From Caecitellus pseudoparvulus (lineage: Eukaryota; Protista; Bigyra: Bicosoecida): a stretch of 64,000 bases of DNA. Below the pieces are notes generated by a model. That model saw nothing but the letters and a program-made list of their open reading frames with translations. It was not told the DNA's origin and did no database searches. Below, in pieces: positions 1 through 64,000 of the stretch. Location: NCBI GenBank assembly GCA_965644315.1, contig CBFFRQ010000067.1:124001-188000 (forward strand), written 5' to 3'. Numbering within the stretch: the first letter of the stretch is position 1; each line of letters begins with the position of its first letter. The position numbers and the translations under genes are program-made.

Positions 1-3000
1 GGTGTGGCAGGGGGCAGCAAGTACATCCTGGGCGGTGTCCTGTTCAAGTTCGCTGTGGATACAGAGGGAATGTACGGGCACAACCACAGCGAGGCTGCCA
101 AAGCAGCCAAGGCTGAGCTACGAGGCATATCCAGCATCACTGCAGCAGCGGTGCCGGGGCTGCGGTATCCCCTGCACTGTGTGGTGGATGTGCTCGGGTA
201 CAGGGTGGTGGCCACATCCCTCCTGCCCATCGGCAGCGACACCCTCTGCTACGGCAGTGCCAACGCAATGGTCACAGTGCACGACGACGAGGAGGCCCTG
301 CGATCTTCCATCGCACAACTGGCGGCGCATCTGAACCTGGCACGACACCCTGTGGGCGACAAGCAGCTGTACTTGGCCGGGGATGTGGAGGGGCACTGCG
401 GGCGGGATGGGCACATGTTCTTGCTGGACACAGCCAGGCTCATGCCTCCGGAGGCGCCTCCACAGTGGCAGGCAGCTACGTGCATTGTGCCTGTACCAGG
501 TGCACATAATGGTGTGCGGCTGTTGCGAGTGCCAGTGGATCAACGGGCAGCCTTTGGGCAGCATGTATGGGCAGCGTTGGTGGGTGCCGCGTTGCCTGAC
601 CGCGTGGTGCCTTGTGAGATGCCTGCGAACCCAGGGACTGTGTTAATCACGAGCGTGTTGCCGTTCGCCAATGTGGTGTGTTGCGCCTTGAATGTGCCTG
701 CACTGCTGCAGCACTTGAGGAGGTGCGGGCTGGAGGCTTCCGCGGTGGAGCATGCCGAGCGGGTCCTCGCCCAACCAACGCGAGTTGCAGCAGGGCTCGC
801 TCGTGATGGGCAACCTGCTCAGCGTGGGCCTCTGTTGATGGTGCCCGTGCGCCCCAAGGCAGCGCACCTGACTCAGCTGCTGCGCCTTGAAGCTGTACAG
901 GCGTCGCCTGTCCCTCTGTCAGCTGATGCCTTCACGGGCTGGGGAAGCACCGACTACCACGTATACAACCCACCTGTTCAGCGTGCCACAGATGCGATGC
1001 TAGAGAGGTCCCTGCCCCAGCTGGCTGCACAGCTCATTCAGCGCGCCACAGGGGGTCGCTTGGCTGTGTGGAAGGCTGGGGACTGTGTGGGCGCCGATGC
1101 TACAGCGGCTGGGCACGTCGTTGACCACGAGAGCTCACCAAGTCGACGTGACGATGCATTCACCTTTCCCGAGTGGACGGTGGAGCGGGGAGAGTTCTCC
1201 ATGAATCGCCTGCTGCGAAAGGAGTTTGGATCAGACAAAGAGGGTGCTGCTGGCCTGGACGCTGAGCCTGGTGATCAAGTCGCTGCTCCCCAGCCGTCAC
1301 TGGAGCATGCCACCGAGGTGCTGGGGGAGTACGCTGCCCAGGGGTATGATACCCGTGCCACTGTAGCGGCACTGCAGGCACACGGACTGGGGGCACTGAA
1401 AGCTGTGCCACTTGCGCGAGGAGCGCCGCCCGTCAGCATCGCTGCCTCCCCACACTTGCCGCTGTTGGTGCCTGCAGTCCCACAAGGGTCCCTGCAAGAT
1501 GACGCGCTAGCACACGCTCTGTCCAGTGTTGACCACGTGTACGTGCGAGAGCTGGACTGGAAGCTGCACTTGCACTCGGCTGGCTGCAACACGCGGCATC
1601 TCGGCCGCCTGGCCCATGTCATTCGAGTGCTGCTGCAGGTGCATGCAGCTGCCGTGAGGTGCCTGCCAGAGTCCGCTGTGGCGGCACTACAGGCCATGCA
1701 GCACAGCATGCTCGCGTACGGCATCGCGCGGTGTTTCTATGCTGAGCTGCGATCGGCGTTGCGGGGCGTGACGGCGCGAGTGGCTGATCGCGGCGAGTCC
1801 AGCGAGTCATCTGAGCAGGTGATGCAGTCCGCTGCACAGTTGGCCCATGACAGCGCCGAGGCGTTGTTCACGTCTCGGCTGCAGTACTCTGGCGTGGGGG
1901 GCAGCAGCTACAGCAGTGATGTGCAGGAGCAGACCCGGCTGCTGGCGTCCTTGCTTGGGAAGTACCCTGGTCTTGTGCCGCCGGAGGAGTGGGCACTGAC
2001 GGGGGCCGGCCTCTGGGCAGGCCTGCCTGAGACATACCGACGACATGCATTCGGCAATGCTCAACGGCTGTGTGGAGCCAGCATGCGGTTTTTCTGTGTG
2101 GACGGCGTGGAGACGTTCGAGTTGTTGCGCCTGCTGCCGCGGCGGCACGCTGCCCAAGCTCAGCGACGGGCGGCGCTGGTGGGACACGTGGCAGCTGCGC
2201 GAGCTGCCAAGCAGCTTGAGCAGCAGGTGGTGCTGGGCTCGCGAGCCGTGCTGTCTCAGGCACTGGGTGCAGCTGTGGCAGATGTGATGCTGAAGCGCCG
2301 TCTGTGTGTGCGGGCGACACCTGGGCTTGCTGTGGCCCACTCCAGGCTGGCGCTGTTGACCATGCTGCAGTCTCCTGAAGACCACGTGTTCGCCCTGAAG
2401 CACCTGTTGCCGTGCGCACTGCAGGCGTGGGGGCAGGCCATTGCCGATGCCTGTTCCGGTGGTGAGCCTGGAACGCTGACGCTGACACCCAGTGCAAGGG
2501 GCAGCATTGAGACTTCCGTCCTGACGCGAGGTTTGAGGAAAATGTGCAAGGTGTTGGAGGGGTGTGTGGAGGAGCGGGGCTTTGCACTGACTGTCGAAGA
2601 TGGGCAGCGCTTGCACGAGTGTGCATGGGCTGTGGAGCTGGTAAGCCAGGCTGCCGCTGCGCTGCTGTCCGTGGCCACACCATGCCAGCAGCAAGGTGCG
2701 CCTGTCCATGCGTTGCGCGTTGGCATGGAGGCTGTGCGTACGAGCATGGTGGTGGCCAGTGAGTTGAAGGAGCTGGTCATGCCGCTCGTGTGGTCCAAGT
2801 GCAGTGCAGCAGTGAAGCGCGCAACGGCGCTTGTCGGCCAGGAAGGAGTGATTGTGACAGGCAGGGCGGCCATGGCGTTGTGGTTGTTGTTGCGCAAGTT
2901 GATGGGGCTGGAGGCGCTGCTGTGCCGCACTGCGTTCTGGGCAGGCTGGCATGATGCCTTGGCGGCGGCACAGCTGCAGCAGCTTCCCCTTGCCAGCCAG

Positions 3001-6000
3001 TTGTCGAACATGTGCAACAGTTTGCTTCAGTGGACCAATGCTGCGAGCGCTGCAACTCTCGAAAGGCGGCAGTCGATGGCACAGCTGGTTCGTGGATGGG
3101 TGGACGCCTGCGCGGGCTCTGGCAGCAGCATTGCCACCGAGTTGCAAGTCAAGTCAGCTGATGGCAACATGCCTGCGTGGTGGTACTTCACGTCTCTGCA
3201 CGGTGAAATGACGCAGGCACTGTGGGGACACTCTGGGGAAACGGACTTCCTGGTCAGCTCCAGCGCGGCCAGTCTGCGTGTGGCTGGAGATGTGGACGAG
3301 CGGTGGCAGGTGGCGTCGGACGGGCACAGCGTGATGCATCGCCAGGGGAAGCAGGCGATGCAGGAAGGCCCGGCGGAGTCAGGGGATCGGACGACTCGTG
3401 ACGTGGGCATGCTTGCGCTGGGGGCGTTGCTGCAGAGCAGTTTGGGGCGGACGATGCAGGGTCACGGCATGACCTTTGAAGCCCGGTCATACTTGGCCGG
3501 CGTACGGGCTTCCCACAACAAAGGCGTGTCCGGTCTGTCATCACTGTCTGTTTACGTCAGTCATGAGTCGGCGAGCTCCATGGTGGCGAGCTCCATGGAG
3601 CACTGGCTGCCAGCAGGGCATGCGCTGTACCCGGTCGAGGTTGCTCTGACAGGAGAGCTGGGAGGCAGCAATGCGGGAAGTGGCACCGGGCAGCAAAGAC
3701 GGGACGTTTTGTTTGGTGTGAATCTTTTGATGATGTGCGGGCTGCCGTGTGTGGATCCCCGCGCTTGCCACCAAGCAGCGCTGTACTGCTCCTCCCCTGC
3801 CCTCATCCCCCTTCATGCCATCCTTCCACGTCGCGGCAGCATCTTTGCCCAGACTGGTTGTGGCATGGCTGGGCAAGTGACACCCCAGGTGGGTCCAGAA
3901 GGGATGGCTCACGGTGCAGGAGCTCTGCGCACAGCTGCGAATCACAGCATCAACAGCCTGAAGTCCATCAAGGCTGTGCTGGCTGCCAGGCACCCCCTGG
4001 CACTGTCCTGCCACACCAACGCAGCGTACTTCCTGCAGCAAACTGGATTGCACCACGGTGCGCTATTGAACACCTGGCGTGCACTGCGCCTTGCCCCCGC
4101 CTCCTGCAGCGGGCGGACCTCTGCGGCTTGGCCAGGCACTGGCTCAGTGCAGGGAGCAGTGCTGCACCTGACAGCGGATGCCTGCCGACGACAGCAGTGG
4201 GATGTAGCAGTAGCCGCCTGCGCAGTCAGCTTGGCATCGTGTGCTGGTCTGCCGCAAGTGGCTGCGTATGAAGAGCTGCTCGCGCTGCACGATGCGCACG
4301 GCCCACAGCTGTGCGACGAGCACCTGCTCAGCGTTGGCAGCAGCTCGGCGCTGGCCAGAGCAGTGACATCTGTGCTGGCTGTGCAGCCTGCGTCTGTGTC
4401 CGTTGTGAGGTGTGCCTCGGCGGTGCCCCTGCTCTTGCGCAGTGCGAGCTTGCTGCTGTGCCACGTGGCTGAGGCAGCCCACCAAGCCGGGCCCTGTGAC
4501 ATTCCAGCAGGCCCCCGGAACGCCAAGGTGACCCTTCTTCCCTACGCTGGCGAGTGGCTGCACTCGGCCTGTGGTTGGAGTCGGGCCCAGGCTGTGCCGG
4601 ATGTCATCGCCGCTCTGTGGGTGTGGGCGCTGCAGGTGGTGTGTCGAGGGGTGCTGGGGAAGCTGCCGCCGCTGCCTGACGACTTGGCTGCGCGGGTGCA
4701 GGAGGTGCAGGGTGCGGCCATGGGTGCAGCCATGGCGTGGTGCCCAGAGTGTCCTCCCGACACACATGCCCAGCAAGTGTCCGCGGATGATGTTGCAACG
4801 ATGGTGGGCGTGAGGCAGGGTCTGGGCGGCCTGCGCGAGCTGGAGCTGCTGCAGGCACAGTCCGCCAATGACGACGACGAAGCCTCCAAGGCGTGGTTGC
4901 TGGAGCACCCGCTGCTTGTGCTGGCCGCAGCTCGGGTGGCAGTCATGGGTGGCTGGTTGACAGCTGCGGAGATGCTGGGCGAGGTGGCTGGGTCGGCCTT
5001 GGCGCAGATGCTGCCCTTGGGACGCGATGTGCCGGAGACGTCTGGGACGCCAGGTGCCGGCAAGACTGCTCTGTCGCAGATGGCGTCAGTGCAAGCTGCG
5101 CGGAACATGGCCCGCGTGAGCAGGGCACTGGAGCCGGCTGTGCAGGAGTTGCTGCAGCTTGGCTTCGCCCGGGAGGAGTGTGTGGCAGGCGTCCTGGCGA
5201 CCAGCTCACTGCAGCTGGCGGCGCCCACTTCCGACTTCTTTGCGCTGAGCCAGGCTGTAATGGACGACCAGGCACACCCCAGCATGGTGTCTCGGCTGCA
5301 AGGCGGCATGGCCGGTGAGCTGGAGCTGGACGTGGCAGCGGCAGCAGAGTGGCTGCTGCAAGACTTGGAGGGCCGTATGCAGGCTGATGTAGCTCACAGC
5401 AGGGCTGAGACGAAGCGTTTGGCGGCTTGGGCTGCGCAGGCAGTGGTGCAGCACGGTGAGATGCCGCCCCAGTGTCTGTTTGACCTTGCCGATGCAGGGG
5501 AGTGGCCGCTGAGCCAACTGAGCTGCATGCGCGCCGATGACGACCATGAGGTGCCGACTGCCTCCCCTGCCACTCGCGAAGCACCACATGACGACGATGC
5601 CACAGGTGGGGAGGTGGGTCAAGCACCAAGTGTGCCTGCTTGGGACCCGCCCCCCGCACAAGTGCAGCTGCAGCATCTGAATGGGCGAGCAGCCATTTCA
5701 CACTTGGTGGGGAGGCTGTACCCGGATCAAACGAACCCGACGGAGTACACAGCGCTGACGAAGTGGTCAATGGGGGGGGCAGACCCGCTGGACTACGTGA
5801 CGGTGTACCGGCACCCTGGCGACCCCGCCCAGGGCATCCCTCCACACTGGCACTACGTGTCCCAGGGACTGTGCAACTTGCTGTCAGACACGGCTGTGCA
5901 CCCGATGCACCCTCCTCGGGTACAGGGCAAGTCGGGCTTCGGCATGGAGTTCACGATGCGCGTTGCGCGGGAGAGCTGGGACACAGAGCTTCCACCCTCC

Positions 6001-7194
6001 TGGCCTGCAACGGTGCTGAATTCTCTCGCGCGTTACACACATCACAGCAAGACGGTGATCGGAGCTTCAGATTTCGTGCAGAGCGGCATGAACACTGGAT
6101 TCCAGGGAGCAGCCCTGTCGCAGAAGGAAGCAGAGGGGGGCTCCCTTGCGCCGTGCAACCTGTCAGCCAGTGTGCGCAACGGCGAGTTGCTGGCAGCCAA
6201 CCTGCCCCACATCGCCACCTGCCCTGACCCCGACCTGCCCACTATCACGTGTGAGACGGGGGAGGTGTCGTTCCACCAAGTGGTGGGCGTGGCAGACCGT
6301 GAGTACGAGATCGCTCGGTCGTGGAGCACTGGTGGGGCGTTGCACCTGCTGCGCCATGCAGTGTTCCGTGATTCGACAGGGAAACCCGTGAATGGTATGA
6401 CACATGGAGCCCTGCGCCCGACTGCCACTGTCGGTGGAGCGTCCGACCCCTGGGCGCAGTGCAGGACACGCAGCGGGGCGTTCCTCCCGGGACCCTACCT
6501 CATCACAGACCCACGCCGCACCTGCGACCTGGCGAGCATCGACCCCACCGTGCAGGCGACCGTGCGAGATCGCATCGCGACGGAAGGCTCATCGCTCGGC
6601 ATCCAGACGGGCTGCCTTGTCTGGCGCCCGCGAGTGGTTGGCATGACGCTGGCGGACTCGCTGGCATTCGTGGCCGTGCCTGGCAGTGCCATGCCAGGCG
6701 TTGAACTGCTCACGACAGCCAGCGTTGCGTCGCTGCTGTCGGTGGCTATGCTGGGGCGTCTACGGCAAGGCATGCCGTTCATCCTGGAGTGCGCCCACCC
6801 CGCCGCACACCAGGCCAAAGACACCAGCAAGGCTCGCGAGGACGCGCAACGACTGGGCGGGTGGGGCCTGTCGCGCCTCGTGGTCATCTTCGTCTCTGAC
6901 GACTGCGACGAGTCCCGCGTGCGGCGCGTCGCAAATGCCGAGGCGCCTTTCGTCGTCACGGAGCCAGGCGTCCTGCAGGTGTACTTGTCACGGGAAGCCA
7001 CGGGGGTGATCGGGGCCTATGCCGCTCAGCCAGAGCATTTCAGGGAGCAGTCCAACATGCCCCTGACGGCGTCGTGGCCCAGCGTAGCACCAGGTTTCAC
7101 GGTGACGGTGGTGCGTGGCGACGAGGACGTCTTCCCGGCGTTTGTGGAGGACTCGCCCGTCCTGCCTCGCAGCATGGTGCAGGACACAGGGTAG
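1..7194 (+). CDS. 5'-partial giant CLU-domain / UBA-like / SUFU (Suppressor of Fused N+C) fusion protein, copy 1
   Basis: Single open frame of about 2396 aa. The N-part has CLU-domain motifs (GGxAGGxKY..LFKFAxD, AAKAAKAELRG, DVLGYRVVA, DVEGH.GRDG..FLLDTARLMPPE, QLLRLEAV, PLSADAF, LHSAGCNTRHLGRL). UBA-like segments lie at ~1320-1390 (QGYDTRATVAALQA) and ~5137-5358 (LLQLGFAREECV...DVAAAAEWLL). From ~5683 it is SUFU-like: LYPDQTNP, WSMGGADPLDYV, HWHYVSQGL, SGFGMEFTMRV, WPATVLNSLARY, FHQVVGV, GPYLITDPRR, EGSSL, MLGRLRQG. Confidence 0.85.
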   Translation, partial: GVAGGSKYILGGVLFKFAVDTEGMYGHNHSEAAKAAKAELRGISSITAAAVPGLRYPLHCVVDVLGYRVVATSLLPIGSDTLCYGSANAMVTVHDDEEALRSSIAQLAAHLNLARHPVGDKQLYLAGDVEGHCGRDGHMFLLDTARLMPPEAPPQWQAATCIVPVPGAHNGVRLLRVPVDQRAAFGQHVWAALVGAALPDRVVPCEMPANPGTVLITSVLPFANVVCCALNVPALLQHLRRCGLEASAVEHAERVLAQPTRVAAGLARDGQPAQRGPLLMVPVRPKAAHLTQLLRLEAVQASPVPLSADAFTGWGSTDYHVYNPPVQRATDAMLERSLPQLAAQLIQRATGGRLAVWKAGDCVGADATAAGHVVDHESSPSRRDDAFTFPEWTVERGEFSMNRLLRKEFGSDKEGAAGLDAEPGDQVAAPQPSLEHATEVLGEYAAQGYDTRATVAALQAHGLGALKAVPLARGAPPVSIAASPHLPLLVPAVPQGSLQDDALAHALSSVDHVYVRELDWKLHLHSAGCNTRHLGRLAHVIRVLLQVHAAAVRCLPESAVAALQAMQHSMLAYGIARCFYAELRSALRGVTARVADRGESSESSEQVMQSAAQLAHDSAEALFTSRLQYSGVGGSSYSSDVQEQTRLLASLLGKYPGLVPPEEWALTGAGLWAGLPETYRRHAFGNAQRLCGASMRFFCVDGVETFELLRLLPRRHAAQAQRRAALVGHVAAARAAKQLEQQVVLGSRAVLSQALGAAVADVMLKRRLCVRATPGLAVAHSRLALLTMLQSPEDHVFALKHLLPCALQAWGQAIADACSGGEPGTLTLTPSARGSIETSVLTRGLRKMCKVLEGCVEERGFALTVEDGQRLHECAWAVELVSQAAAALLSVATPCQQQGAPVHALRVGMEAVRTSMVVASELKELVMPLVWSKCSAAVKRATALVGQEGVIVTGRAAMALWLLLRKLMGLEALLCRTAFWAGWHDALAAAQLQQLPLASQLSNMCNSLLQWTNAASAATLERRQSMAQLVRGWVDACAGSGSSIATELQVKSADGNMPAWWYFTSLHGEMTQALWGHSGETDFLVSSSAASLRVAGDVDERWQVASDGHSVMHRQGKQAMQEGPAESGDRTTRDVGMLALGALLQSSLGRTMQGHGMTFEARSYLAGVRASHNKGVSGLSSLSVYVSHESASSMVASSMEHWLPAGHALYPVEVALTGELGGSNAGSGTGQQRRDVLFGVNLLMMCGLPCVDPRACHQAALYCSSPALIPLHAILPRRGSIFAQTGCGMAGQVTPQVGPEGMAHGAGALRTAANHSINSLKSIKAVLAARHPLALSCHTNAAYFLQQTGLHHGALLNTWRALRLAPASCSGRTSAAWPGTGSVQGAVLHLTADACRRQQWDVAVAACAVSLASCAGLPQVAAYEELLALHDAHGPQLCDEHLLSVGSSSALARAVTSVLAVQPASVSVVRCASAVPLLLRSASLLLCHVAEAAHQAGPCDIPAGPRNAKVTLLPYAGEWLHSACGWSRAQAVPDVIAALWVWALQVVCRGVLGKLPPLPDDLAARVQEVQGAAMGAAMAWCPECPPDTHAQQVSADDVATMVGVRQGLGGLRELELLQAQSANDDDEASKAWLLEHPLLVLAAARVAVMGGWLTAAEMLGEVAGSALAQMLPLGRDVPETSGTPGAGKTALSQMASVQAARNMARVSRALEPAVQELLQLGFAREECVAGVLATSSLQLAAPTSDFFALSQAVMDDQAHPSMVSRLQGGMAGELELDVAAAAEWLLQDLEGRMQADVAHSRAETKRLAAWAAQAVVQHGEMPPQCLFDLADAGEWPLSQLSCMRADDDHEVPTASPATREAPHDDDATGGEVGQAPSVPAWDPPPAQVQLQHLNGRAAISHLVGRLYPDQTNPTEYTALTKWSMGGADPLDYVTVYRHPGDPAQGIPPHWHYVSQGLCNLLSDTAVHPMHPPRVQGKSGFGMEFTMRVARESWDTELPPSWPATVLNSLARYTHHSKTVIGASDFVQSGMNTGFQGAALSQKEAEGGSLAPCNLSASVRNGELLAANLPHIATCPDPDLPTITCETGEVSFHQVVGVADREYEIARSWSTGGALHLLRHAVFRDSTGKPVNGMTHGALRPTATVGGASDPWAQCRTRSGAFLPGPYLITDPRRTCDLASIDPTVQATVRDRIATEGSSLGIQTGCLVWRPRVVGMTLADSLAFVAVPGSAMPGVELLTTASVASLLSVAMLGRLRQGMPFILECAHPAAHQAKDTSKAREDAQRLGGWGLSRLVVIFVSDDCDESRVRRVANAEAPFVVTEPGVLQVYLSREATGVIGAYAAQPEHFREQSNMPLTASWPSVAPGFTVTVVRGDEDVFPAFVEDSPVLPRSMVQDTG

Positions 7195-7436
7195 GGCCCT
7201 GGGCTTCAGTGCAGTGGGCAGACACGTGTCCACTTGAGGTGAAGAGGTGGGATGGTGTGTGAGTTAAGGGGTTTGGCGAGGCGGCACACATTTGAGGCCT
7301 TGTGACAAACCTCGAAGTCCGCACAGCATGCACCCGACGGTGAGGGTGGCCAGGAGTGCTGCACTGACAATGCAGGCTGCAAGGTACTGGTGGGGTGTGC
7401 TGTTGAGTGGGTGTTGTGTGGTGGTCGGGTCGGGTC

Positions 7437-7571
7437 ATGTGCGGAACTCGGCTGGTTGCGTGGATGCGGCAGGGAAGTGACTCGGGTGCACGGGCCGCGC
7501 AGCACACATGCCGCCGCGGTCCAGATGCGGTGAAAACTGAGCGTGTGCAGCTGGCCCTGCCAGGCTCTTCA
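7437..7571 (+). pseudogene. Truncated duplicate of the ASNSD1 5' end
   Basis: MCGTRLVAWMRQGSDSGARAAQHTCRRGPDAVKTERVQLALPGSS matches the N-terminus encoded from 16154. Similarity stops at 7571, and the frame runs into unrelated AT-richer sequence and stops at 7688. Confidence 0.85.
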
Positions 7572-8079
7572 GTGCATGTACGTTTTGTGTCCAGATCACT
7601 GGATACTTGTCTTTTGGAGTTGTTCTGCTCTTCCGTTTCTTCTTCAACGTTTACGGTACCGCGTGTGAAGGTCTCACTTGCTCCTTGAGCATGTCATTAA
7701 CGGAACTCCATAGATGCATAGCAGTTCCTTATGCATACAGAGGTAGATCTGTTTCCTCTCAGGGCGAAGCCGTCCGAAACACCCACTCCTTGCCAAGATC
7801 CAAAGTGTGCCTTTGGTTTGACGAAACGCCGCGGAAACGCACGCTCCTCCCTGCGCTGCAGATGATGTTTATCCTTAGCCAGAACAATAACTACACCTTC
7901 AATCAAAGCAAGATCAACCTGCAGTCAGACATGGTTCCAACGTAACTCTTCCGCTGGTCAATGACTTCTCAACCACATTGTCGCGTTGTTGGTCGGCCAC
8001 GTCTCTCTCATGGGCTCTCTTTGACTCGAAGTCTGGAATCCACCACCACACTGAAGGCCTCAAGGATTCAACCTTCATA

Positions 8080-11000
8080 ATGGACGAACTTGATGATGAC
8101 TTGGTCCAAGCCATTGCTTTGAGCCTGCAAAGTCCAGATTGTCGAGAAGATCGACAACAAGCCCCAGCTTTTCTTCGCATAGCAAACACCACCAGTTGCG
8201 CGATCACACCAGCTCCCGCGTCCACAGGCCCAGCTGATTCTGAGCCTGCTCCCAAACAGCAACAAAGCACTCTCTCGGACGAATCGCCTTTCCCTGGTGC
8301 CTTTGGGACTCACTCAGGAAGCCCTCACACTCAGGCTTCTGGCGCAGCTGCATCTGGGTCACCCCTATGGTCTGAGGCTGAAACAGAGCCTCAAGTTTAT
8401 CGCACACCTGAAGAATTCGCAGCGTATGGTGAAAGACTGGAAGTCATTGGAATAAACCGTTATGGAGGACTTCCTACACCAGATGCGGGAGATCGTGCTC
8501 TTGCCGCTCAAGTGCGCGACTGGACCGCCGAGCTGCATGACATCCTGGACCTCACACCCCTGTCCCTGGAGCAAGCCGCCATGCGAGAGGGCGCCCTCAC
8601 GCGCATCAGCTCAGCCTTCGTCGCGGCCTGTGCGCCCATCGCGGAGATCCTCGTGGCCGAGCTGCCTCTGGCCGATGCCCAGAAAAGTCTGCCGCCCATC
8701 GACATCGGGGGTGTAGCAGGGGGCAGCAAGTACATCCTGGGCGGTGTCCTGTTCAAGTTTGCCATGGATACGGAGTGGATATACGGGAAAAATAACAACC
8801 AGGCAGAAAAGGCCGCCAAGGCTGAGCTACGGGGCATGTCCAGCATCACTGCAGCAGCAGTGCCGGGGCTGCGGTATCCCCTGCACTGTGTGGTGGATGT
8901 GCTCGGGTACAGGGTGGTGGCCACATCCCTCCTGCCCATCGGCAGCGACACCCTCTGCTACGGCAGTGCCAACGCAATGGTCACAGTGCACGACGACGAG
9001 GAGGCCCTGCGATCTTCCATCGCACAACTGGCGGCGCATCTGAACCTGGCACGACACCCTGTGGGCGACAAGCAGCTGTACTTGGCCGGGGATGTGGAGG
9101 GGCACTGCGGGCGGGATGGGCACATGTTCTTGCTGGACACAGCCAGGCTCATGCCTCCGGAGGCGCCTCCGCAGTGGCAGGCAGCCGTGTGCATCGTGCC
9201 TGTACCAGGTGCACATGATGGTGTGCAGCTACGGCATGTACCAGTGGCCAACAAGGCAACCTTTCAGCATCATGCATGGGGGGCGTTGGTGGGTGCCGCG
9301 CTACCCGACCATGTGGCGCCATGCGAGGTGCCTGCGGACCCAGGGACTGCATTGATCACAACTGTGTTGCCGTTCGCCAATGTGGTGTGCTGTGCCTTGA
9401 ATGCGCCTGCAGTCCTGCAGCACTTGAGGAGGTGCGGACTGGAGGCTTCTGTGCTGGAGCACGCCGAGCGGGTGCTCGCCCAACCGACGCGAGCTGCAGC
9501 AGGGCTCGCTCGTGATGGGCAACCTGCTCAGCGTGGACCGCTAGTGGTGGTGTCTGAGCGCCCCAAGGGAGCGTTCCTGACTCAGCTGCTGCGCCTTGAA
9601 GCTGTACAGGCGTCGCCTGTCCCTCTGTCAGCTGATGCCTTCTCGCCCTGGGGAAGCACCGACTACCACGTATACAACCCACCTGTTCAGCGTGCCACAG
9701 ATGCGATGCTAGAGAGGGCCCTGCCCCAGCTGGCTGCGCAGCTCATTGAGCGGGCCACGGGGGGTCGCTTGGCTGTGTGGAAGGCTGCGGACTGTGTGGG
9801 CGCCGATGCTACAGCGGCTGGGCACGTCGTTGACCACGAGAGCTCACCAAGTCGACGTGACGATGCATTCACCTTTCCCGAGTGGACGGTGGAGCGGGGA
9901 GAGTTCTCCATGAATCGCCTGCTGCGAAAGGAGTTTGGATCAGACAAAGAGGGTGCTGCTGGCCTGGACGCTGAGCCTGGTGACCAACTCGCTGCTCCCC
10001 AGCCGTCACTGGAGCATGCCACCGAGGTGTTGGGGGAGTACGCTGCCCAGGGGTATGATACCCGTGCCACTGTAGCGGCACTGCAGGCACACGGACTGGG
10101 GGCACTGAAAGCTGTGCCACTTGCGCGAGGAGCACCGCCCGTCAGCATCGCTGCCTCCCCACACTTGCCGCTGTTGGTGCCTGCAGTCCCACAAGGGTCC
10201 CTGCAAGATGACGCGCTAGCACACGCTCTGTCCAGTGTTGACCACGTGTACGTGCGAGAGCTGGACTGGAAGCTGCACTTGCACTCGGCTGGCTGCAACA
10301 CGCGGCATCTCGGCCGCCTGGCCCATGTCATTCGAGTGCTGCTGCAGGTGCATGCAGCTGCCGTGAGGTGCCTGCCAGAGTCCGCTGTGGCGGCACTGCG
10401 GGCCATGCAGGACAGTATGTTGGCATATGGCATTGCGCGGTGTTTCTACGCTGAGCTGCGTGCGGCGTTGCGGGGCGTGACGGCACGTGTGAGAGATCGG
10501 TCAGGTTCCAGCGAGTCATCTGAGCGGGTGATGCAGTCCGCTGCACAGTTGGCCCATGACAGCGCCGAGGCGTTGTTCACGTCTCGGCTGCAGTACTCTG
10601 GCGTGGGGGGCAGCAGCTACAGCAGTGATGTGCAGGAGCAGACCCGGCTGCTGGCGTCCTTGCTTGGGAAGTACCCTGGTCTTGTGCCGCCGGAGGAGTG
10701 GGCACTGACGGGGGCCGGCCTCTGGGCAGGCCTGCCTGAGACATACCGACGACATGCATTCGGCAATGCTCAACGGCTGTGTGGAGCCAGCATGCGGTTT
10801 TTCTGTGTGGACGGCGTGGAGACGTTCGAGTTGTTGCGCCTGCTGCCGCGGCGGCACGCTGCCCAAGCTCAGCGACGGGCGGCGCTGGTGGGACACGTGG
10901 CAGCTGCGCGAGCTGCCAAGCAGCTTGAGCAGCAGGTGGTGCTGGGCTCGCGAGCCGTGCTGTCTCAGGCACTGGGTGCAGCTGTGGCAGATGTGATGCT

Positions 11001-14000
11001 GAAGCGCCGTCTGTGTGTGCGGGCGACACCTGGGCTTGCTGTGGCCCACTCCAGGCTGGCGCTGTTGACCATGCTGCAGTCTCCTGAAGACCACGTGTTC
11101 GCCCTGAAGCACCTGTTGCCGTGCGCACTGCAGGCGTGGGGGCAGGCCATTGCCGATGCCTGTTCCGGTGGTGAGCCTGGAACGCTGACGCTGACACCTC
11201 AGTGCAAGGGGCAGCATTGAGACTTCCGTCCTGACGCGAGGTTTGAGGAAAATGTGCAAGGTGTTGGAGGGGTGTGTGGAGGAGCGGGGCTTTGCACTGA
11301 CTGTCGAAGATGGGCAGCGCTTGCACGAGTGTGCATGGGCTGTGGAGCTGGTAAGCCAGGCTGCCGCTGCGCTGCTGTCCGTGGCCACACCATGCCAGCA
11401 GCAAGGTGCGCCTGTCCATGCGTTGCGCGTTGGCATGGAGGCTGTGCGTACGAGCATGGTGGTGGCCAGTGAGTTGAAGGAGCTGGTCATGCCGCTCGTG
11501 TGGTCCAAGTGCAGTGCAGCAGTGAAGCGCGCAACAGCACTTGTCGAGTCAGGAAGGAGTGATTGTGACAGGCAGGGCGGCCATGGCGTTGTGGTTGTTG
11601 TTGCGCAAGTTGATGGGGCTGGAGGCGCTGCTGTGCCGTACTGCGTTCTGGGCAGGCTGGCATGCTGCCTTGGCGGCGGTGCAGCTGCAGCAGCTTCCCC
11701 TTGCCAGCCAGTTGTCGAACATGTGCAACAGTTTGCTTCAGTGGACCAATGCTGCGAGCGCTGCAACTCTCGAAAGGCGGCAGTCGATGGCACAGCTGGT
11801 TCGTGGATGGGTGGACGCCTGCGCGGGCTCTGGCAGCAGCATTGCCACCGAGTTGCAAGTCAAGTCAGCTGATGGCAACATGCCTGCGTGGTGGTACTTC
11901 ACGTCTCTGCACGGTGAAATGACGCAGGCACTGTGGGGACACTCTGGGGAAACGGACTTCCTGGTCAGCTCCAGCGCGGCCAGTCTGCGTGTGGCTGGAG
12001 ATGTGGACGAGCGGTGGCAGGTGGCGTCGGACGGGCACAGCGTGATGCATCGCCAGGGGAAGCAGGCGATGCAGGAAGGCCCGGCGGAGTCAGGGGATCG
12101 GACGACTCGTGACGTAGGCATGCTTGCGCTGGGGGCGTTGCTGCAGAGCAGCTTGGGGCGGACGATGCAGGGTCACGGCATGACCTTTGAAGCCCGGTCA
12201 TGCTTGGCCGGCGTACGGGCTTCCCACAACAAAGGCGTGACCGGTCTGTCATCGCTGTCTGTTTACGTCAGCCATGAGTCGGCGAGCTCCATGGTGGCTA
12301 GCTCCATGGAGCACTGGCTGCCAGCAGGGCATGCGCTGTACCCGGTCGAGGTCGCTCAGACAGGAGAGCTGGGAGGCAGCAATGCGGGAAGTGGCACCGG
12401 GCAGCAAAGACGGGACGTTTTGTTTGGTGTGAATCTTTTGATGATGTGCGGGCTGCCGTGTGTGGATCCCCGCGCTTGCCACCAAGCAGCGCTGTACTGC
12501 TCCTCCCCTGCCCTCATCCCCCTTCATGCCATCCTTCCACGTCGCGGCAGCATCTTTGCCCAGACTGGTTGTGGCATGGCTGGGCAAGTGACTCCCCAGG
12601 TGGGTCCAGAAGGGATGGCTCACGGTGCTGGCGTTTTGCGCACAGCTTCAAACCACAGCATCAACAGCCTGAAGTCCATCAAGGCTGTGCTGGCTGCCAG
12701 GCACCCCCTGGCGCTGACGTGCCACACCAACGCAGCGTACTTCCTGCAGCAAACTGGATTGCACCACGGTGCGCTATTGAACACCTGGCGTGCACTGCGC
12801 CTTGCCCCCGCCTCCTGCAGCGGGCGGACCTCTGCGGCTTGGCCAGGCACTGGCTCAGTGCAGGGAGCAGTGCTGCACCTGACAGCGGATGCCTGCCGAC
12901 GACAGCAGTGGGATGTAGCAGTAGCCGCCTGCGCAGTCAGCTTGGCATCGTGTGCTGGTCTGCCGCAAGTGGCTGCGTATGAAGAGCTGCTCGCGCTGCA
13001 CGATGCGCACGGCCCACAGCTGTGCGACGAGCACCTGCTCAGCGTTGGCAGCAGCTCGGCGCTGGCCAGAGCAGTGACATCTGTGCTGGCTGTGCAGCCT
13101 GCGTCTGTGTCCGTTGTGAGGTGTGCCTCGGCGGTGCCCCTGCTCTTGCGCAGTGCGAGCTTGCTGCTGTGCCACGTGGCTGAGGCAGCCCACCAAGCCG
13201 GGCCCTGTGACATTCCAGCAGGCCCCCGGAACGCCAAGGTGACCCTTCTTCCCTACGCTGGCGAGTGGCTGCACTCGGCCTGTGGTTGGAGTCGGGCCCA
13301 GGCTGTGCCGGATGTCATCGCCGCTCTGTGGGTGTGGGCGCTGCAGGTGGTGTGTCGAGGGGTGCTGGGGAAGCTGCCGCCGCTGCCTGACGACTTGGCT
13401 GCGCGGGTGCAGGAGGTGCAGGGTGCGGCCATGGGTGCAGCCATGGCGTGGTGCCCAGAGTGTCCTCCCGACACACATGCCCAGCAAGTGTCCGCGGATG
13501 ATGTTGCAACGATGGTGGGCGTGAGGCAGGGTTTGGGCGGCCTGCGCGAGCTGGAGCTGCTGCAGGCACAGTCCGCCAATGACGACGACGAAGCCTCCAA
13601 GGCGTGGTTGCTGGAGCACCCGCTGCTTGTGCTGGCCGCAGCTCGGGTGGCAGTCATGGGTGGCTGGTTGACAGCTGCGGAGATGCTGGGCGAGGTGGCT
13701 GGCTCGGCCTTGGCGCAGACTCTGCCCTTGGGACGCGATGTGCCGGAGACGTCTGGGACGCCAGGTGCCGGCAAGACTGCTCTGTCGCAGATGGCGTCAG
13801 TGCAAGCTGCGCGGAACATGGCCCGCGTGAGCAGGGCACTGGAGCCGGCTGTGCAGGAGTTGCTGCAGCTTGGCTTCGCCCGGGAGGAGTGTGTGGCAGG
13901 CGTCCTGGCGACCAGCTCACTGCAGCTGGCACCGTCCACTTCCGACTTCTTTGCGCTGAGCCAGGCTGTGATGGACGACCAGGTACACCCCAGCATGGTG

Positions 14001-15911
14001 TCTGGGCTGCAAGGCGGCATGGCCGGTGAGCTGGAGCTGGACGTGGCGGCGGCAGCAGAGTGGCTGCTGCAGGACCTGCAAGGCCGCATGCAGGCCGATG
14101 TAGCTCACAGCAGGGCTGAGACGAAGCGTTTGGCGGCTTGGGCTGCGCAGGCAGTGGTGCAGCACGGTGAGATGCCGCCTCAGTGTCTGTTTGACCTTGC
14201 CGATACAGGGGAGTGGCCGCTGAGCCAGTTGAGTTGCATAGGCACCGATGACGATCATGAGGTGCCCACTGCCTCCCCTGCCACTCGTGAAGCACCACAT
14301 GACGACGATGCCACAGGTGGGGAGGTGGGCCAAGCACCAAGTGTGCCTGCTTGGGACCCGCCCCCCGCACAAGTGCAGCTGCAGCATCTGAACGGGCGAG
14401 CAGCCATTTCACACTTGGTGGGGAGGCTGTACCCTGACCAAACAAACCCAACAGAACATACTCCAATAACGAAGTGGTCGATGGGAGGACCAGACCCGCT
14501 GGACTACGTGACGGTGTACCAGCACCCTGGCGACCCCGCCCAGGGCATTCCTCCACACTGGCACTACGTGTCCCAGGGACTGTGCAACTTGCTGTCAGAC
14601 ACGGCTGTGCACCCGATGCACCCTCCTCGCATGCAGGGCAAGTCGGGCTTTGGCATGGAGTTCACGATGCGCGTTGCCCGGGAGAGCTGGGACACTGCCA
14701 TTCCACCGCTTTGGCCTGTTACAGTGCTCAACTCGCTTGCCAGGAAGGTCCACAGTACTGGAAAGGTATTGGTTACCTCAACATTGTCCCATGGTGGTAT
14801 GCTTATCCGCCCACCTGCCCATGGAGACAAGTTCCATTCGGACGCCATGCTCGGTGGGGCTCTTGCAGCAAGCAACCTGTCAGCCAGTGTGCGCAACGGC
14901 GAGTTGCTCGCAGCCAACCTGCCCCACATCGCCACCTGCCCTGACCCCGACCTGCCCACCATCACGTGTGAGACGGGGGAGGTGTCGTTCCACCAAGTAG
15001 TGGGGGTGGCCGACAGTGAGTACGAGATCGCCCGGTCGTGGAGCACCGGCGGGGCGCTGCACCTGCTGCGCCACGCAGTGTTCCGTGATGCAGCTGGTGA
15101 GCCAGTTTCTGGGCTGTGGCTTAGCAGGCTTCCTACCACCGAAATTGTCGGTGGAGCGTCCGACCCCTGGGCGCAGTGCAGAACACGTAGCGGGGCGTTC
15201 CTCCCGGGACCCTACCTCGTCACTGACCCACGCCGCACCTGTGACCTGGCGAGCATCGACCCCACCGTGCAGGCGACCGTGCGAGATCGCATCGCGACGG
15301 AAGGCTCATCGCTCGGCATCCAGACGGGCTGCCTTGTCTGGCGCCCGCGAGTGGTTGGCATGACGCTGGCGGACTCGCTGGCATTCGTGGCCGTGCCTGG
15401 CAGCGCCATGCCAGGCGTTGAACTGCTCACGACAGCCAGCGTTGCGTCGCTGCTGTCGGTGGCTATGCTGGGGCGTCTACGGCAAGGCATGCCGTTCATC
15501 CTGGAGTGCGCCCACCCCGCCGCACACCAGGCCAAAGACACCAGCAAGGCTCGCGAGGACGCGCAGCGACTGGGTGGGTGGGGCCTGTCGCGCCTTGTGG
15601 TCATCTTCGTCTCTGACGACTGCGACGAGTCCCGCGTGCGGCGCGTCGCAAACGCCGAGGCGCCTTTCGTCGTCACGGAGCCAGGCGTCCTGCAGGTGTA
15701 CTTGTCACGGGAAGCCACGGGGGTGATCGGGGCCTATGCCGCTCAGCCAGAGCATTTCAGGGAGCAGTCCAACATGCCCCTGACGGCGTCGTGGCCCAGC
15801 GTAGCACCAGGTTTCACGGTGACTGTGGTGCGTGGCGACGAGGACGTCTTCCCGGCGTTTGTGGAGGACTCGCCCGTCCTGCCTCGCAGCATGGTGCAGG
15901 ACACAGGGTAG
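8080..15911 (+). pseudogene. UIM-CLU-UBA-SUFU fusion protein, copy 2, interrupted by two +1 frameshifts (pseudogene or assembly error)
   Basis: The ATG at 8080 begins MDELDDDLVQAIALSLQ (UIM consensus). Colinear with copy 1. An extra T at ~11199 (ACACCTCAGT vs ACACCCAGT) and an extra base at ~11547 (TTGTCGAGTCAGG vs TTGTCGGCCAGG) split it into ORFs 7978-11220, 11243-11872 and 11541-15911. Confidence 0.8.
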
Positions 15912-16288
15912 GGCCCTGGGCTTCAGTGCAGTGGGCAGACACGTGTCCACTTGAGGTGAAGAGGTGGGATGGTGGGTGAGTTAAGGGGTTTGGCGAGGCG
16001 GCACACATTTGAGGCCTTGTGACAAACCTCGAAGTCCGCACAGCATGCACCCGACGGTGAGGGTGGCCAGGAGTGCTGCACTGACAATGCAGGCTGCAAG
16101 GTACTGGTGGGGTGTGCTGTTGAGTGGGTGTTGTGTGGGGGCCGGTTCGCATTATGTGCGGAACTCGGTTGGTTGCGTGGGTGCGGCAGGGAAGTGACTC
16201 GGGTGCACGGGCAGCGCAGCACACATGCCGCCGCGGTCCAGATGCGGTGAAAACTGAGCGTGTGCAGCTGGCCCTGCCAGGCTCTTCA
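8710..16288 (+). repeat. Tandem segmental duplication, unit 2 (the portion alignable within the window)
   Basis: Aligns base by base with 1-7571. Confidence 0.95.
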
Positions 16289-61528: not shown

Positions 61529-64000
61529 TCACTCCTCCCCGGATTCAGGCAGGGTGCCCAGGCCAGAGAAAGCGGCTGACGGGTCGTATCCTGGAGTGGC
61601 CAGGAGTGACCCGAGGCCGAAGGAGTTGCCCCCCTCGCCCCACAGCCCCACGCCACCCCCCATCCCGATGCCCAGGTCGAAGGACCCCAACTGGGAGGAG
61701 AAGGAGGGGGGTGGCGCGCCACCCGCCACACTGTGGCGGGCCTGCCCCGCACCTCGAGCGGACGCCGCCCCCTGACGAGGGGAGGGCGCCGTGCCTGCGA
61801 CACTGTGGCGCGTGGAGCCTTGGCGGGCGGAGGGCGTGGAGGAAGACTGGGGATTGTGGCCGGTGGAGGGGGGGTCACCGCCCGAAGGGGGGGCTTCTCC
61901 CCACCCCCGCTCATCGTCCCCGCCTTGGGCTGTGTGGGAGCCGAGGGAGGACAGGGTGCCCCCTGTGGAGGTGGACACGGAGGAGGAACGCGTGTTCCGA
62001 CCAGTGGGCGGGTGGCTCGGCCAGGCGCCGGCGTGTGGCGGCGGGGCACTGCCTGCACTTGGGCTTGGCGGGGCGTTGCCTGTTTTGGCGTGGCCCGGAG
62101 GAGGGCACCGCGTGGGTGGAGGGGGGGGTGCTGATCCCAGCAGTCCAGACCCCCCCGAGCGAGAGCTGGACACACTGCTGCCTCGCTCCCTCTCACTGCC
62201 TTCTTCAGGCACTTGGTCCAGCAACCCCCCTCCCAGCATCGCCGGGGGGGGCCGAGGTTGGGCAGGTCGAGGGGTGGGCCAGACCCCCCCACTGGGGGCC
62301 GCCCCCTGCCCACTGGACATGGGCGCTGGGTGTGACGGCGCCATGGCCCCTGCCAGCCCCGTGGCAGGCGGCGCCCCTTTCACCAGGGCATTGCCCAGTG
62401 TCGTAGGGGGTGCTGAAGCTCGTGCCGAGCGGGGATGGGGTGCCGCCTGCGCCTCTGGCCGCCGCCGCAGCATGGGGCCTGACGAGTCCAGGGCGATGCT
62501 GCCTCGCATCGGGGGCCGCCCACCACCACCACCACCGCCGCCGCCTTGTCCCCGCAGTCGGATAGCGCTGGCCAAGGACTGCCCCGCAGCAGCCACCGCC
62601 GCGCCCAAGTTAGTGCCGTGCTGCAAGCTGTGCATGGACTGGGGCTGGGCGGAGTGGCGGCGGGGGGGCGCCTGGTTGCCGCCCTGCACATCCACCTCCA
62701 CAGCGGAGGACAGGCGCCGGTGGTGGGAGGGCTGCAGGGGCACTGATGCGCTGGTGATGGAGTCACGCCCAGCACCCCCCCCTGCCACACGCATAGAGTG
62801 GGCGCGAGCTGCAGCGCCAGAACGCAGCAGCTCAGCCATGGATGACGTGGGTGGTGGGGGGTGTGCCCCGCTGGGCGGGGGCGTGGGCTGGCCCCACGAG
62901 CCAAGGCTGCGGTCTTGCCAAGCGTGCACACCTCCTGGCGGGCCAGCGTGCCACTCACGGGGAGGGTGCTCAGCGGGCAGCTGGCCTGCCGTCCACATGG
63001 CACTGCCACGGCGCTGGTCCATGGTGGAGTCCACTGAGAAGGCGTAGCTGCCACGCCGTGGGCCCATACCTCCGCCGATCAAGTCAGGGTGCTGTGGAAC
63101 GGGCGGAGTTCGTGGTGGGTTGTGCAGGTGCAAGGCACAGCGTGCACAGGAAGCCAGGGCGCGCTGCCAGCTCAGCTGGCGAGGACAGTACAGTGGCTCA
63201 GTTTGGAAGTTGAGTTCACGCCCCCTTGCGAGGGGTCACACTCGAAAGATGGTTGAAAAAGATCGTCACAGCCGAAACAAGCAGGCAAGGCAGAGAGCAG
63301 CGCAGGTCGGGCAGACGGCAGCGCTCGGTCAGGAAGTTGAGTTCACGCCCCCTTGCGAGGGGTCACACTCGAAAGATGGTTAGGTATGATCTTCATGGCG
63401 CAGGTGCCGCCGAGGCAACACGGGGGGCAACCGCAACGGCCACAGACACAAGTGCAACGGGCAGCTTCGTGGCAGGCCAACGTACTTGAGGTGGGGAATC
63501 TGCCCCGTGGGCAGGCCAACCCTGCTGCACCGTCGGCAGCAGGGAACAAGAGGTGCCCACCTGGACCAGAGCCCCTGTCACGGCATCCAGTGCAAGCAGG
63601 CAGTGCTGCACGTCGGCTTCACGCCGGTCCTGAGGCGGTGCGGAAGTTGGGCGCGCACATTCAGTGCCAGGCGTTGAGGGAGGATGGATGGGCGCGACCA
63701 GGCTCACCTGTACGAGGTTCAGGAGGCTTCGCACTTCCACAGAGTAGTCCAGGGCCCCTTGCAGTTCCTGGGAGCGCGGGGAGGGAGGGAGGTGTGCCGG
63801 GCGCGTGAACTTCAGCCTTGGCTTGAGGCAGTCGGCGCACGCCGCCTTTGCAAGCGTCGAGTGCCGTGGGACGCGACCAGCTCACTCACAGCTGACGCTG
63901 TGGGGGTACTGTTGGACACTGCAGACCATGCCTTGACGACAATGGAGTGGCACTGCTGCAGGGCCTGCACGGCGTGGGAGATCACCGCTGCGCCCTGTGT
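61529..64000 (-). CDS. 5'-partial Pro/Gly/Ser-rich protein; host of two snoRNAs in intron 63092-63485
   Basis: The last exon (61529-63091) joins in phase 0 to an upstream exon ending ...SPPQ|GTACG. Upstream exon structure is unresolved. Confidence 0.55.
63195..63273 (-). ncRNA. Box C/D snoRNA, SNORD2/snR39B-like (LSU Gm805 equivalent), copy B
   Basis: Minus strand reads GGCT-GTGACGA(C)...ACCATCTTTCGAGT-GTGA(D')...GTGAACT(C')...CTGA(D)-GCC. The guide is antisense to the conserved LSU sequence CGAAAGAUGGU. Confidence 0.8.
63325..63401 (-). ncRNA. Box C/D snoRNA, SNORD2/snR39B-like, copy A
   Basis: Minus strand has C box ATGAAGA (63390-63396), a 50-nt core identical to copy B, and D box CTGA (63329-63332). 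Confidence 0.75.

Follow-up and report, generated by a model that had tools for sequence, protein, structure and literature searches.

Two old tandem paralogs in a protist genome, each joining a CLU domain to a two-lobed Suppressor of Fused (SUFU) module, are nearly identical over most of their length but differ sharply in short islands, the strongest of which lies on the wall of the SUFU clamp that holds Gli in animals. Patterns of divergence islands are already known; that an ancient island sits at the binding wall here is real and well supported. We consider it an even bet that gene conversion has homogenized these paralogs while selection kept the islands, leaving copy 2 with a remodelled surface and a different partner.

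A tandem repeat with islands of divergence

The window, the whole 64-kb stretch of DNA analysed here, contains a direct tandem repeat with a unit of ~8.7 kb, in which positions 1-7571 match 8710-16288 at 95% identity; the repeat's left end lies 197 bases 5' of the window start. Each unit encodes CLU near the protein start and SUFU at the end, with weak UIM and UBA matches. The main features, all on the forward strand, are as follows.

1..7194, forward: gene copy 1, intronless, UIM - CLU - UBA-like - two-lobed SUFU, 2641 aa; its start lies 731 bases 5' of the window
10..456, forward: CLU domain of copy 1, part within the window (PF13236; K..E..D..D pattern)
5137..5220, forward: UBA-like helices, weak (PF00627 E 0.0055, below the Pfam cut-off)
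5680..7191, forward: SUFU module of copy 1 (N and C lobes), type 1 (PF05076 E 1.6e-23; human SUFU E 1.9e-42; model TM 0.80 versus 4km9)
6433..7571, forward: homogenized 3' block (C-lobe, 3' flank, next-gene stub), grouping by haplotype or sample and not by paralog type
7437..7571, forward: duplicated 5' stub of the downstream asparagine-synthetase-domain gene, marking the repeat's right end (full gene from 16154)
7572..8511, forward: copy-2-specific upstream region and N-terminus, with a UIM-like motif at 8092-8130 (GC 51%, GC3 0.35)
8080..15911, forward: gene copy 2, architecture as in copy 1, with +1 insertions at 11201 and 11545
8518..9165, forward: CLU domain of copy 2, by profile match
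14391..15908, forward: SUFU module of copy 2 (N and C lobes), type 2 (model TM 0.81 versus 4km9)

The N-lobe domain (PF05076) is present in both copies. The C-lobe profile is weak (PF12470, E 0.08), and this lobe was assigned through models matching full-length human SUFU. Both modules were predicted as two-lobed SUFU (TM 0.76-0.81 across structure targets), a fold match that is partly circular because the models were built on animal alignments. Overall, the two modules are 89% identical. Genes identified nearby encode abhydrolase, VPS9, asparagine-synthetase-domain, W2 and kinesin proteins, and a short direct repeat of 59 bases (95% identity, spacing 127) lies at 63196-63381. The host genome (30.6 Mb) has three SUFU matches, namely the two window copies and contig C59. 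Its 18S gene is short (1697 nt) and its mitochondrial genome of 41.7 kb reads TGA as Trp (code 4), two features that would suit a bicosoecid-like stramenopile. The window stretch is also present in marine metagenomes.

The first-pass annotation had described near-identical flanks around an abrupt break at ~5985-6160, and we recovered exactly this: the copies are 95-98% identical at the DNA level on both sides of the 5985-6155 patch (190/197 over 5788-5984; 203/214 over 6156-6369) and drop to ~50% within it (57/115 over 5985-6099). The peptides it gave are exact translations of 6025-6141 (copy 1) and 14736-14858 (copy 2), and its in-frame, stop-free gain of 6 nt is a single 6-nt indel near 6100/14812-14817. 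Its further patches at ~5740-5785 and ~6373-6430 correspond to islands A (37/51, 73%) and C (32/63). Calling the main patch barely alignable was too strong, as the strand can be aligned gap-free, with R, H, V, S, G and M still in register.

5737..5787, forward: island A, copy 1; strand beta1 and the next loop (human ~52-65), with 4 amino-acid changes and pS 0.77
14448..14498, forward: island A, copy 2; run X1 shows it as a loose end at 5758
5985..6155, forward: island B, copy 1; helix alpha3 (5986-6030), strand beta5 region (6031-6084) and a lineage-specific insertion loop (6085-6155)
6034 and 6070, forward: equivalents of Tyr147 and Asp159 in island B, copy 1, by alignment to human SUFU
14696..14872, forward: island B, copy 2; Lys (14745) and Thr (14781) in place of Tyr and Asp, with a loop 2 residues longer
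6370..6432, forward: island C, copy 1; within a ~40-residue insertion absent from animal SUFU, pLDDT <50
15087..15149, forward: island C, copy 2; from paralog alignment and sample comparison
6595..6615, forward: beta9 wall (human Val269/Ala271 region), with identical residues in copy 2 at 15312-15332

Amino-acid change is concentrated in island B, where 35 of 62 codons differ in the encoded residue (128/2459 across the gene); 5000 random placements of a 62-codon window never captured more than 14 differences. Island C differs at 13 of 21 residues (pS 0.79), and the 253 codons after it differ by one residue only (748/759 bases identical over 6433-7191). The annotation's view that divergence concentrates at the SUFU binding strand was partly right: the highest peak of the alignable gene is there, and others lie in the N-terminus (145-180 codons) and in patches of the CLU region. 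Within the divergent N-terminus, the UIM-like motif alone aligns well. Further islands between the copies cover window positions 1-160, 455-900, 1655-1805 and 5250-5560, the first of which directly follows the Lys presumed to be catalytic in CLU.

Read by eye, the K..E..D..D pattern in the CLU domain of copy 1 is suggestive of a kinase-type active site. The pattern is kept in both window CLU domains, in the outgroup ortholog P0039 and at loci L044 and L048, all of which may possibly be active atypical kinases. A search of the CLU domain against PDB sequences returned no match. A canonical CLUH (CLU_N, GSKIP, CLU, eIF3_p135, TPR) sits at a separate locus of the same genome, and the window gene does not have this ortholog architecture. 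At least eight further CLU-domain genes (L043-L050) include the canonical CLUH and one gene with PUB and TPR domains; the CLU family of this genome is thus expanded, with links to the ubiquitin system.

Position of the islands on the SUFU clamp

In human SUFU, Tyr147 and Asp159 hydrogen-bond a Gli histidine, and His164 latches Glu376 without contacting Gli (PMC3852661); Gli binds between beta5, which bears Asp159, and beta9 (bioRxiv 10.64898/2026.01.06.698042). Islands were mapped by alignment to human SUFU numbering, and the sequence search pairs the Tyr and Asp of copy 1 with human Tyr147 and Asp159. The chain offset to human numbering, which we take to be 20, agrees with the 12-residue spacing between Tyr and Asp. 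Together with the published beta5/beta9 site, this pairing places island B on alpha3 and the beta5 wall of the clamp. The loop that follows beta5 in island B is an insertion without an animal counterpart. Island A corresponds to beta1, a binding site for Fused and, by prediction, for the GLI C-terminal domain (GLI-SIC site).

The histidine pocket formed by Tyr147 and Asp159 is kept in copy 1 and replaced by Lys and Thr in copy 2, just as the first-pass annotation had read it. It had also listed His164 as a Gli contact. Tyr147 and Asp159 stand as contacts; His164 is the latch residue, and the His164-Glu376 latch is missing from both copies, which have Gly and Ser at the aligned positions.

Across the beta5 region, 14 of 18 residues differ between the copies, versus 15/363 at other core positions (P ~2e-14). 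The adjoining insertion loop changes at 17 of 24 residues, and insertions without an animal counterpart hold 27 of the 56 differences, a significant 3.4-fold loop enrichment. The opposite (beta9) wall and the C-lobe do not co-vary with island B. By alignment, the variable residues peak on the beta5 wall, with about half of all differences in insertions and beta9 unchanged. Model confidence over the strand is lower in copy 2 (38 versus 59 in copy 1). We infer with fair confidence, from these aligned residues, that the binding surface of copy 2 has changed.

To polarize the change we used a related organism, whose single-copy syntenic CLU-SUFU ortholog, P0039, shares 38% identity in the module; animal SUFU and this fused ortholog were found by region searches. 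Where the copies differ in islands A and B, the outgroup agrees with copy 1 at 12 sites and with copy 2 at two (P=0.013), and the terminal branch of copy 2 is 0.12 versus 0.012. Tyr occupies the 147 position in 15/15 animal SUFUs, 29/30 bacterial SUFUs, the outgroup and copy 1; copy 2 has Lys. These outgroup matches and the conservation of Tyr elsewhere identify copy 2, on sequence grounds, as the derived form. The outgroup has Tyr and Glu at the Tyr147 and Asp159 positions, and the sampled bacterial homologs mostly have His at 159. Within beta5, copy 1 and the outgroup are identical at 8/18 positions only. The N-lobe groups with animal SUFU against bacterial homologs (support 100/99). Animals are not alone in having the two-lobed form: numerous bacteria (Stenotrophomonas, Actinomadura, Nocardia, Comamonas) possess SUFU proteins of 330-360 aa that can be aligned across both lobes. 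Between the outgroup locus (L041) and the window, synteny of the downstream W2 and WW-kinesin genes is kept, and the abhydrolase-VPS9 pair has switched from the downstream to the upstream side and is inverted.

Age of the islands and what may have maintained them

Synonymous divergence shows that the islands are far older than their surroundings appear: pS is 0.72-0.89 inside them and 0.05-0.20 in flanks 50-200 bases away. Synonymous sites are saturated in all three islands (in island B, pS 0.72, pN 0.40 and dN/dS ~0.2), and pN is below pS in islands B (P=2e-4), A and C. Saturated pS with low pN marks the islands as ancient and constrained rather than recently hypervariable, and the intact frame together with pN below pS indicates that copy 2 evolved as a working gene. 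Positive selection was not supported by dN/dS, which is below 1; with dS saturated, an old burst is possible. A dN/dS of ~0.2 is an outcome that the first-pass annotation had itself named as refuting, and it counts against diversifying selection; it does not address divergence held by selection against conversion. We also considered a cassette copied from elsewhere and rejected it, as the patch is homologous between copies and the genome has no second source; a viral scan revealed no viral donor of island sequence.

Only two types were seen across one genome, four sequencing runs and three scaffolds, a small sampling, with 0-2 amino-acid changes per patch within each type. Runs X1, X5 and X9 carry both types and X10 carries type 1. 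Type 2 appears in X1 as loose ends at islands A, B and C, in X9 as a loose end beside a type 1 contig spanning the patch, and in X5 with a joint skipping 5984-6155. Read depth in metagenome X5 is 14.8 over the spacer, 14.4 over type 1, 11.4 over the type 2 joint and 26.6 over the flanks, so the spacer and each type are at about half of flank depth. In X10, a type 1 contig covers 5135-6518, coverage is absent over 7622-8400, depth is flat and the downstream gene follows directly without the spacer, indicating that copy 2 is missing in some strains. In metagenome scaffolds L021 and L034, an N gap begins exactly at 5984, and L033 is type 1. A database protein from L033 (P0037) joins an M16 peptidase start to this SUFU; the scaffold is probably chimeric at this join, and we ignored the front part.

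While the islands sort by type, the C-lobe sorts by haplotype: 12 sites over 6433-7191 unite copies 1 and 2 to the exclusion of three other sequences, with no site dividing them by type (12:0). In X5, which appears to be two-copy, both copies share letters unlike both window copies. These site patterns show concerted evolution of the flanks, although the assemblies may be collapsed or co-polished; part of the identity between the copies may stem from co-polishing.

In the explanation we prefer, two old tandem paralogs swap sequence through gene conversion and unequal crossing-over, which keeps most of the gene as similar as alleles, and short islands would escape because selection removes conversions that overwrite them. 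In the SUFU N-lobe these islands are beta1, the alpha3-beta5 clamp wall plus the loop beside it, and a second insertion at the surface. Copy 1 retains the ancestral Tyr/acid pocket, which in animals holds the Gli histidine, and the rebuilt pocket of copy 2 would probably take a different peptide partner. At the protein level, the SUFU module may clamp a client peptide as an added beta-strand, the UIM and UBA may read ubiquitin, and the kinase-fold CLU may act on, or hold, the client delivered by the clamp, as a ubiquitin-aware enzyme or scaffold. A single crossover within the 3' block, where the copies are 99% identical, would remove copy 2, and sample X10 does lack it; that the copy 2 type lasted to dS saturation despite this supports selection. 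Against selection, copy 2 is dispensable, given its absence from X10, and its assembly has two frameshifts; the C-lobe and beta9 wall are unchanged, islands also occur in the N-terminus and CLU region, beta5 varies between copy 1 and the outgroup too, and the differences in low-confidence insertion loops lie where indels could neutrally block conversion.

This last point underlies the alternative that survives best, although we regard it as unlikely: that fast insertion loops and the 6-nt indel broke pairing and divergence spread from them into the strand with no selected change. Indels and substitutions are known conversion terminators, lineage-specific insertions of pLDDT <50 lie in or next to islands B and C, and dN/dS is below 1. 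Lower GC3 in the copy 2 islands (32:17, P=0.044) likewise fits a long absence of GC-biased conversion. However, island A is free of indels and only 51 bases long and is still saturated, and the densest change falls in the conserved strand, not the loop, with loss of a near-invariant Tyr. The change is also asymmetric (12:2), and conversion tracts of several hundred bases should eventually overwrite islands of 50-170 bases.

Base composition bears on a further, quite unlikely origin, in which copy 2 is an orthologous allele of a diverged relative, integrated in tandem and then overwritten by conversion save for the islands. GC3 in the copy 2 N-terminal 144 codons (8080-8511) is 0.35 versus 0.62 in copy 1 (genome ~0.66-0.80), and copy-2-specific upstream DNA is 51% GC versus 60%; this AT shift is compatible with a prolonged absence of pairing and with a foreign origin alike. 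The outgroup and X10 both have a single type 1 copy beside the same downstream gene, as such introgression would lead one to expect. Yet no donor appeared in metagenome, viral or bacterial scans, the region upstream of copy 2 has no trace of the genes flanking copy 1, and an ordinary ortholog would be expected to retain the Tyr.

Selection on the islands might also reflect conflict. In this distinctly improbable extension, the SUFU clamp would serve as the sensor of an intracellular conflict or immune receptor, coupled to kinase-fold CLU and ubiquitin-binding motifs, the paralogs recognizing different foreign peptides (from prey bacteria or giant viruses) in a long-term balance; if true, it would join the bacterial antitoxin role of SUFU to the Gli-clamp role in animals.

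Different specificity and lost binding would look alike in the sequence of copy 2. We find it highly doubtful that the clamp is simply dead, with copy 2 kept for other reasons (a separate promoter and N-terminus, which it does have, a decoy role or a ligand-independent form) while the strand drifted. Mutations of Tyr147 and Asp159 abolish GLI binding by human SUFU, and copy 2 has lost both residues; the lower model confidence over the copy 2 strand points the same way. But the strand itself is constrained (pN 0.55 versus pS 0.89, P=0.02), type 2 is conserved among samples, and a dead clamp has no reason to resist back-conversion unless the loss itself was favoured.

The polymorphic receptor family suggested by the first-pass annotation, with diversifying selection on a variable or exchangeable binding cassette over a constant scaffold, proved very improbable. 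Copy number does vary, the divergence peak is on the binding strand, and bacterial SuFu domains have been proposed as immunity proteins with versatile interfaces (PMC3113570, PMC3482391); against this stand the existence of two types only, their near-invariance within type, dN/dS ~0.2 and the lack of donor cassettes in the genome.

Assembly here is imperfect. The +1 insertions of copy 2 coincide with switches between copy-1-like and C59-like (haplotype-like) letters, suggesting that both are probably polishing errors. Contig C59 (locus L004, 8707 bases) is exactly one repeat unit, copy-2-like in the CLU-region islands and copy-1-like in the SUFU islands; it may be a third copy from unequal crossing-over or a collapsed second haplotype, the latter suggested by its letters making up about half of the depth in X1 (rough figures). 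An assembly chimera or error as the source of island B can nonetheless be dismissed, with type 2 sequence recovered independently in X1, X5, X9 and L021 and type 1 in X9, X10 and L033.

Comparison with known systems

The preferred reading, of paralogs homogenized by conversion around selected islands, touches several known systems. The window gene shares the CLU domain (PF13236) with CLUH/Clueless, and human CLUH has a kinase-like CLU topology with its catalytic residues reported lost (PMC10041065). The window paralog differs in carrying UIM, UBA-like and SUFU parts and in apparently retaining kinase-type catalytic residues. No host protein combining UIM, kinase-fold CLU, UBA and two-lobed SUFU turned up in the published literature searched; nor, within the incomplete coverage of that search, did any non-animal case of a two-lobed SUFU that is joined to CLU, duplicated and altered at its surface.

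With human and Drosophila Suppressor of Fused (PDB 4KM9, 4KMD, 4BLB, 6LPH), the module shares the two-lobed fold and, in copy 1, the Tyr147/Asp159 equivalents. It differs in forming the C-terminus of a 2600-residue CLU fusion, in lacking the His164/Glu376 latch in both copies and the long disordered region, in having two added insertions, and in being duplicated with beta5 rebuilt in copy 2. No PF01085 or PF18366 match to Gli/Hedgehog homologs was detected in the genome, a weak negative in a search where no positive control matched. One weak Frizzled/Smoothened-family match lies at G000:C29:212886-213428 (E 6.5e-6). The protist module would work much as animal SUFU does; on present evidence, which consists of weak negatives, it is not a Hedgehog component.

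The bacterial SuFu superfamily has the same fold and includes two-lobed forms of 340-350 aa, and bacterial Imm-SuFu proteins are proposed to use a variable interface to bind a range of partners (PMC3113570, PMC3482391). The protist gene differs from these in that its module is closer to animal SUFU and that no polymorphic toxin, the linkage that characterizes Imm-SuFu, is found among the identified neighbour genes.

To our knowledge, work on the SUFU clamp has dealt almost solely with Gli, and the animals sampled show no variation at its key residues. The window offers a natural pair of modules whose differences fall mainly on one wall of the clamp and the loops close to it, in a genome with no detectable Hedgehog or Gli. 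Comparing the partners of both modules would reveal what a two-lobed eukaryotic SUFU binds outside Hedgehog and whether its clamp can be re-aimed.

The closest precedents for the pattern itself are exon 5 of the red/green opsins and RHD/RHCE, in which divergence peaks at a functional site inside conversion-homogenized sequence (PMC3924837). The protist islands show the same local-peak signature. They differ from these cases in that synonymous divergence is saturated, three islands lie in one lobe, one paralog is present or absent among samples and the functional difference is putative. The SUFU islands thus provide a clean, very old case of divergence islands outlasting conversion in a protist.
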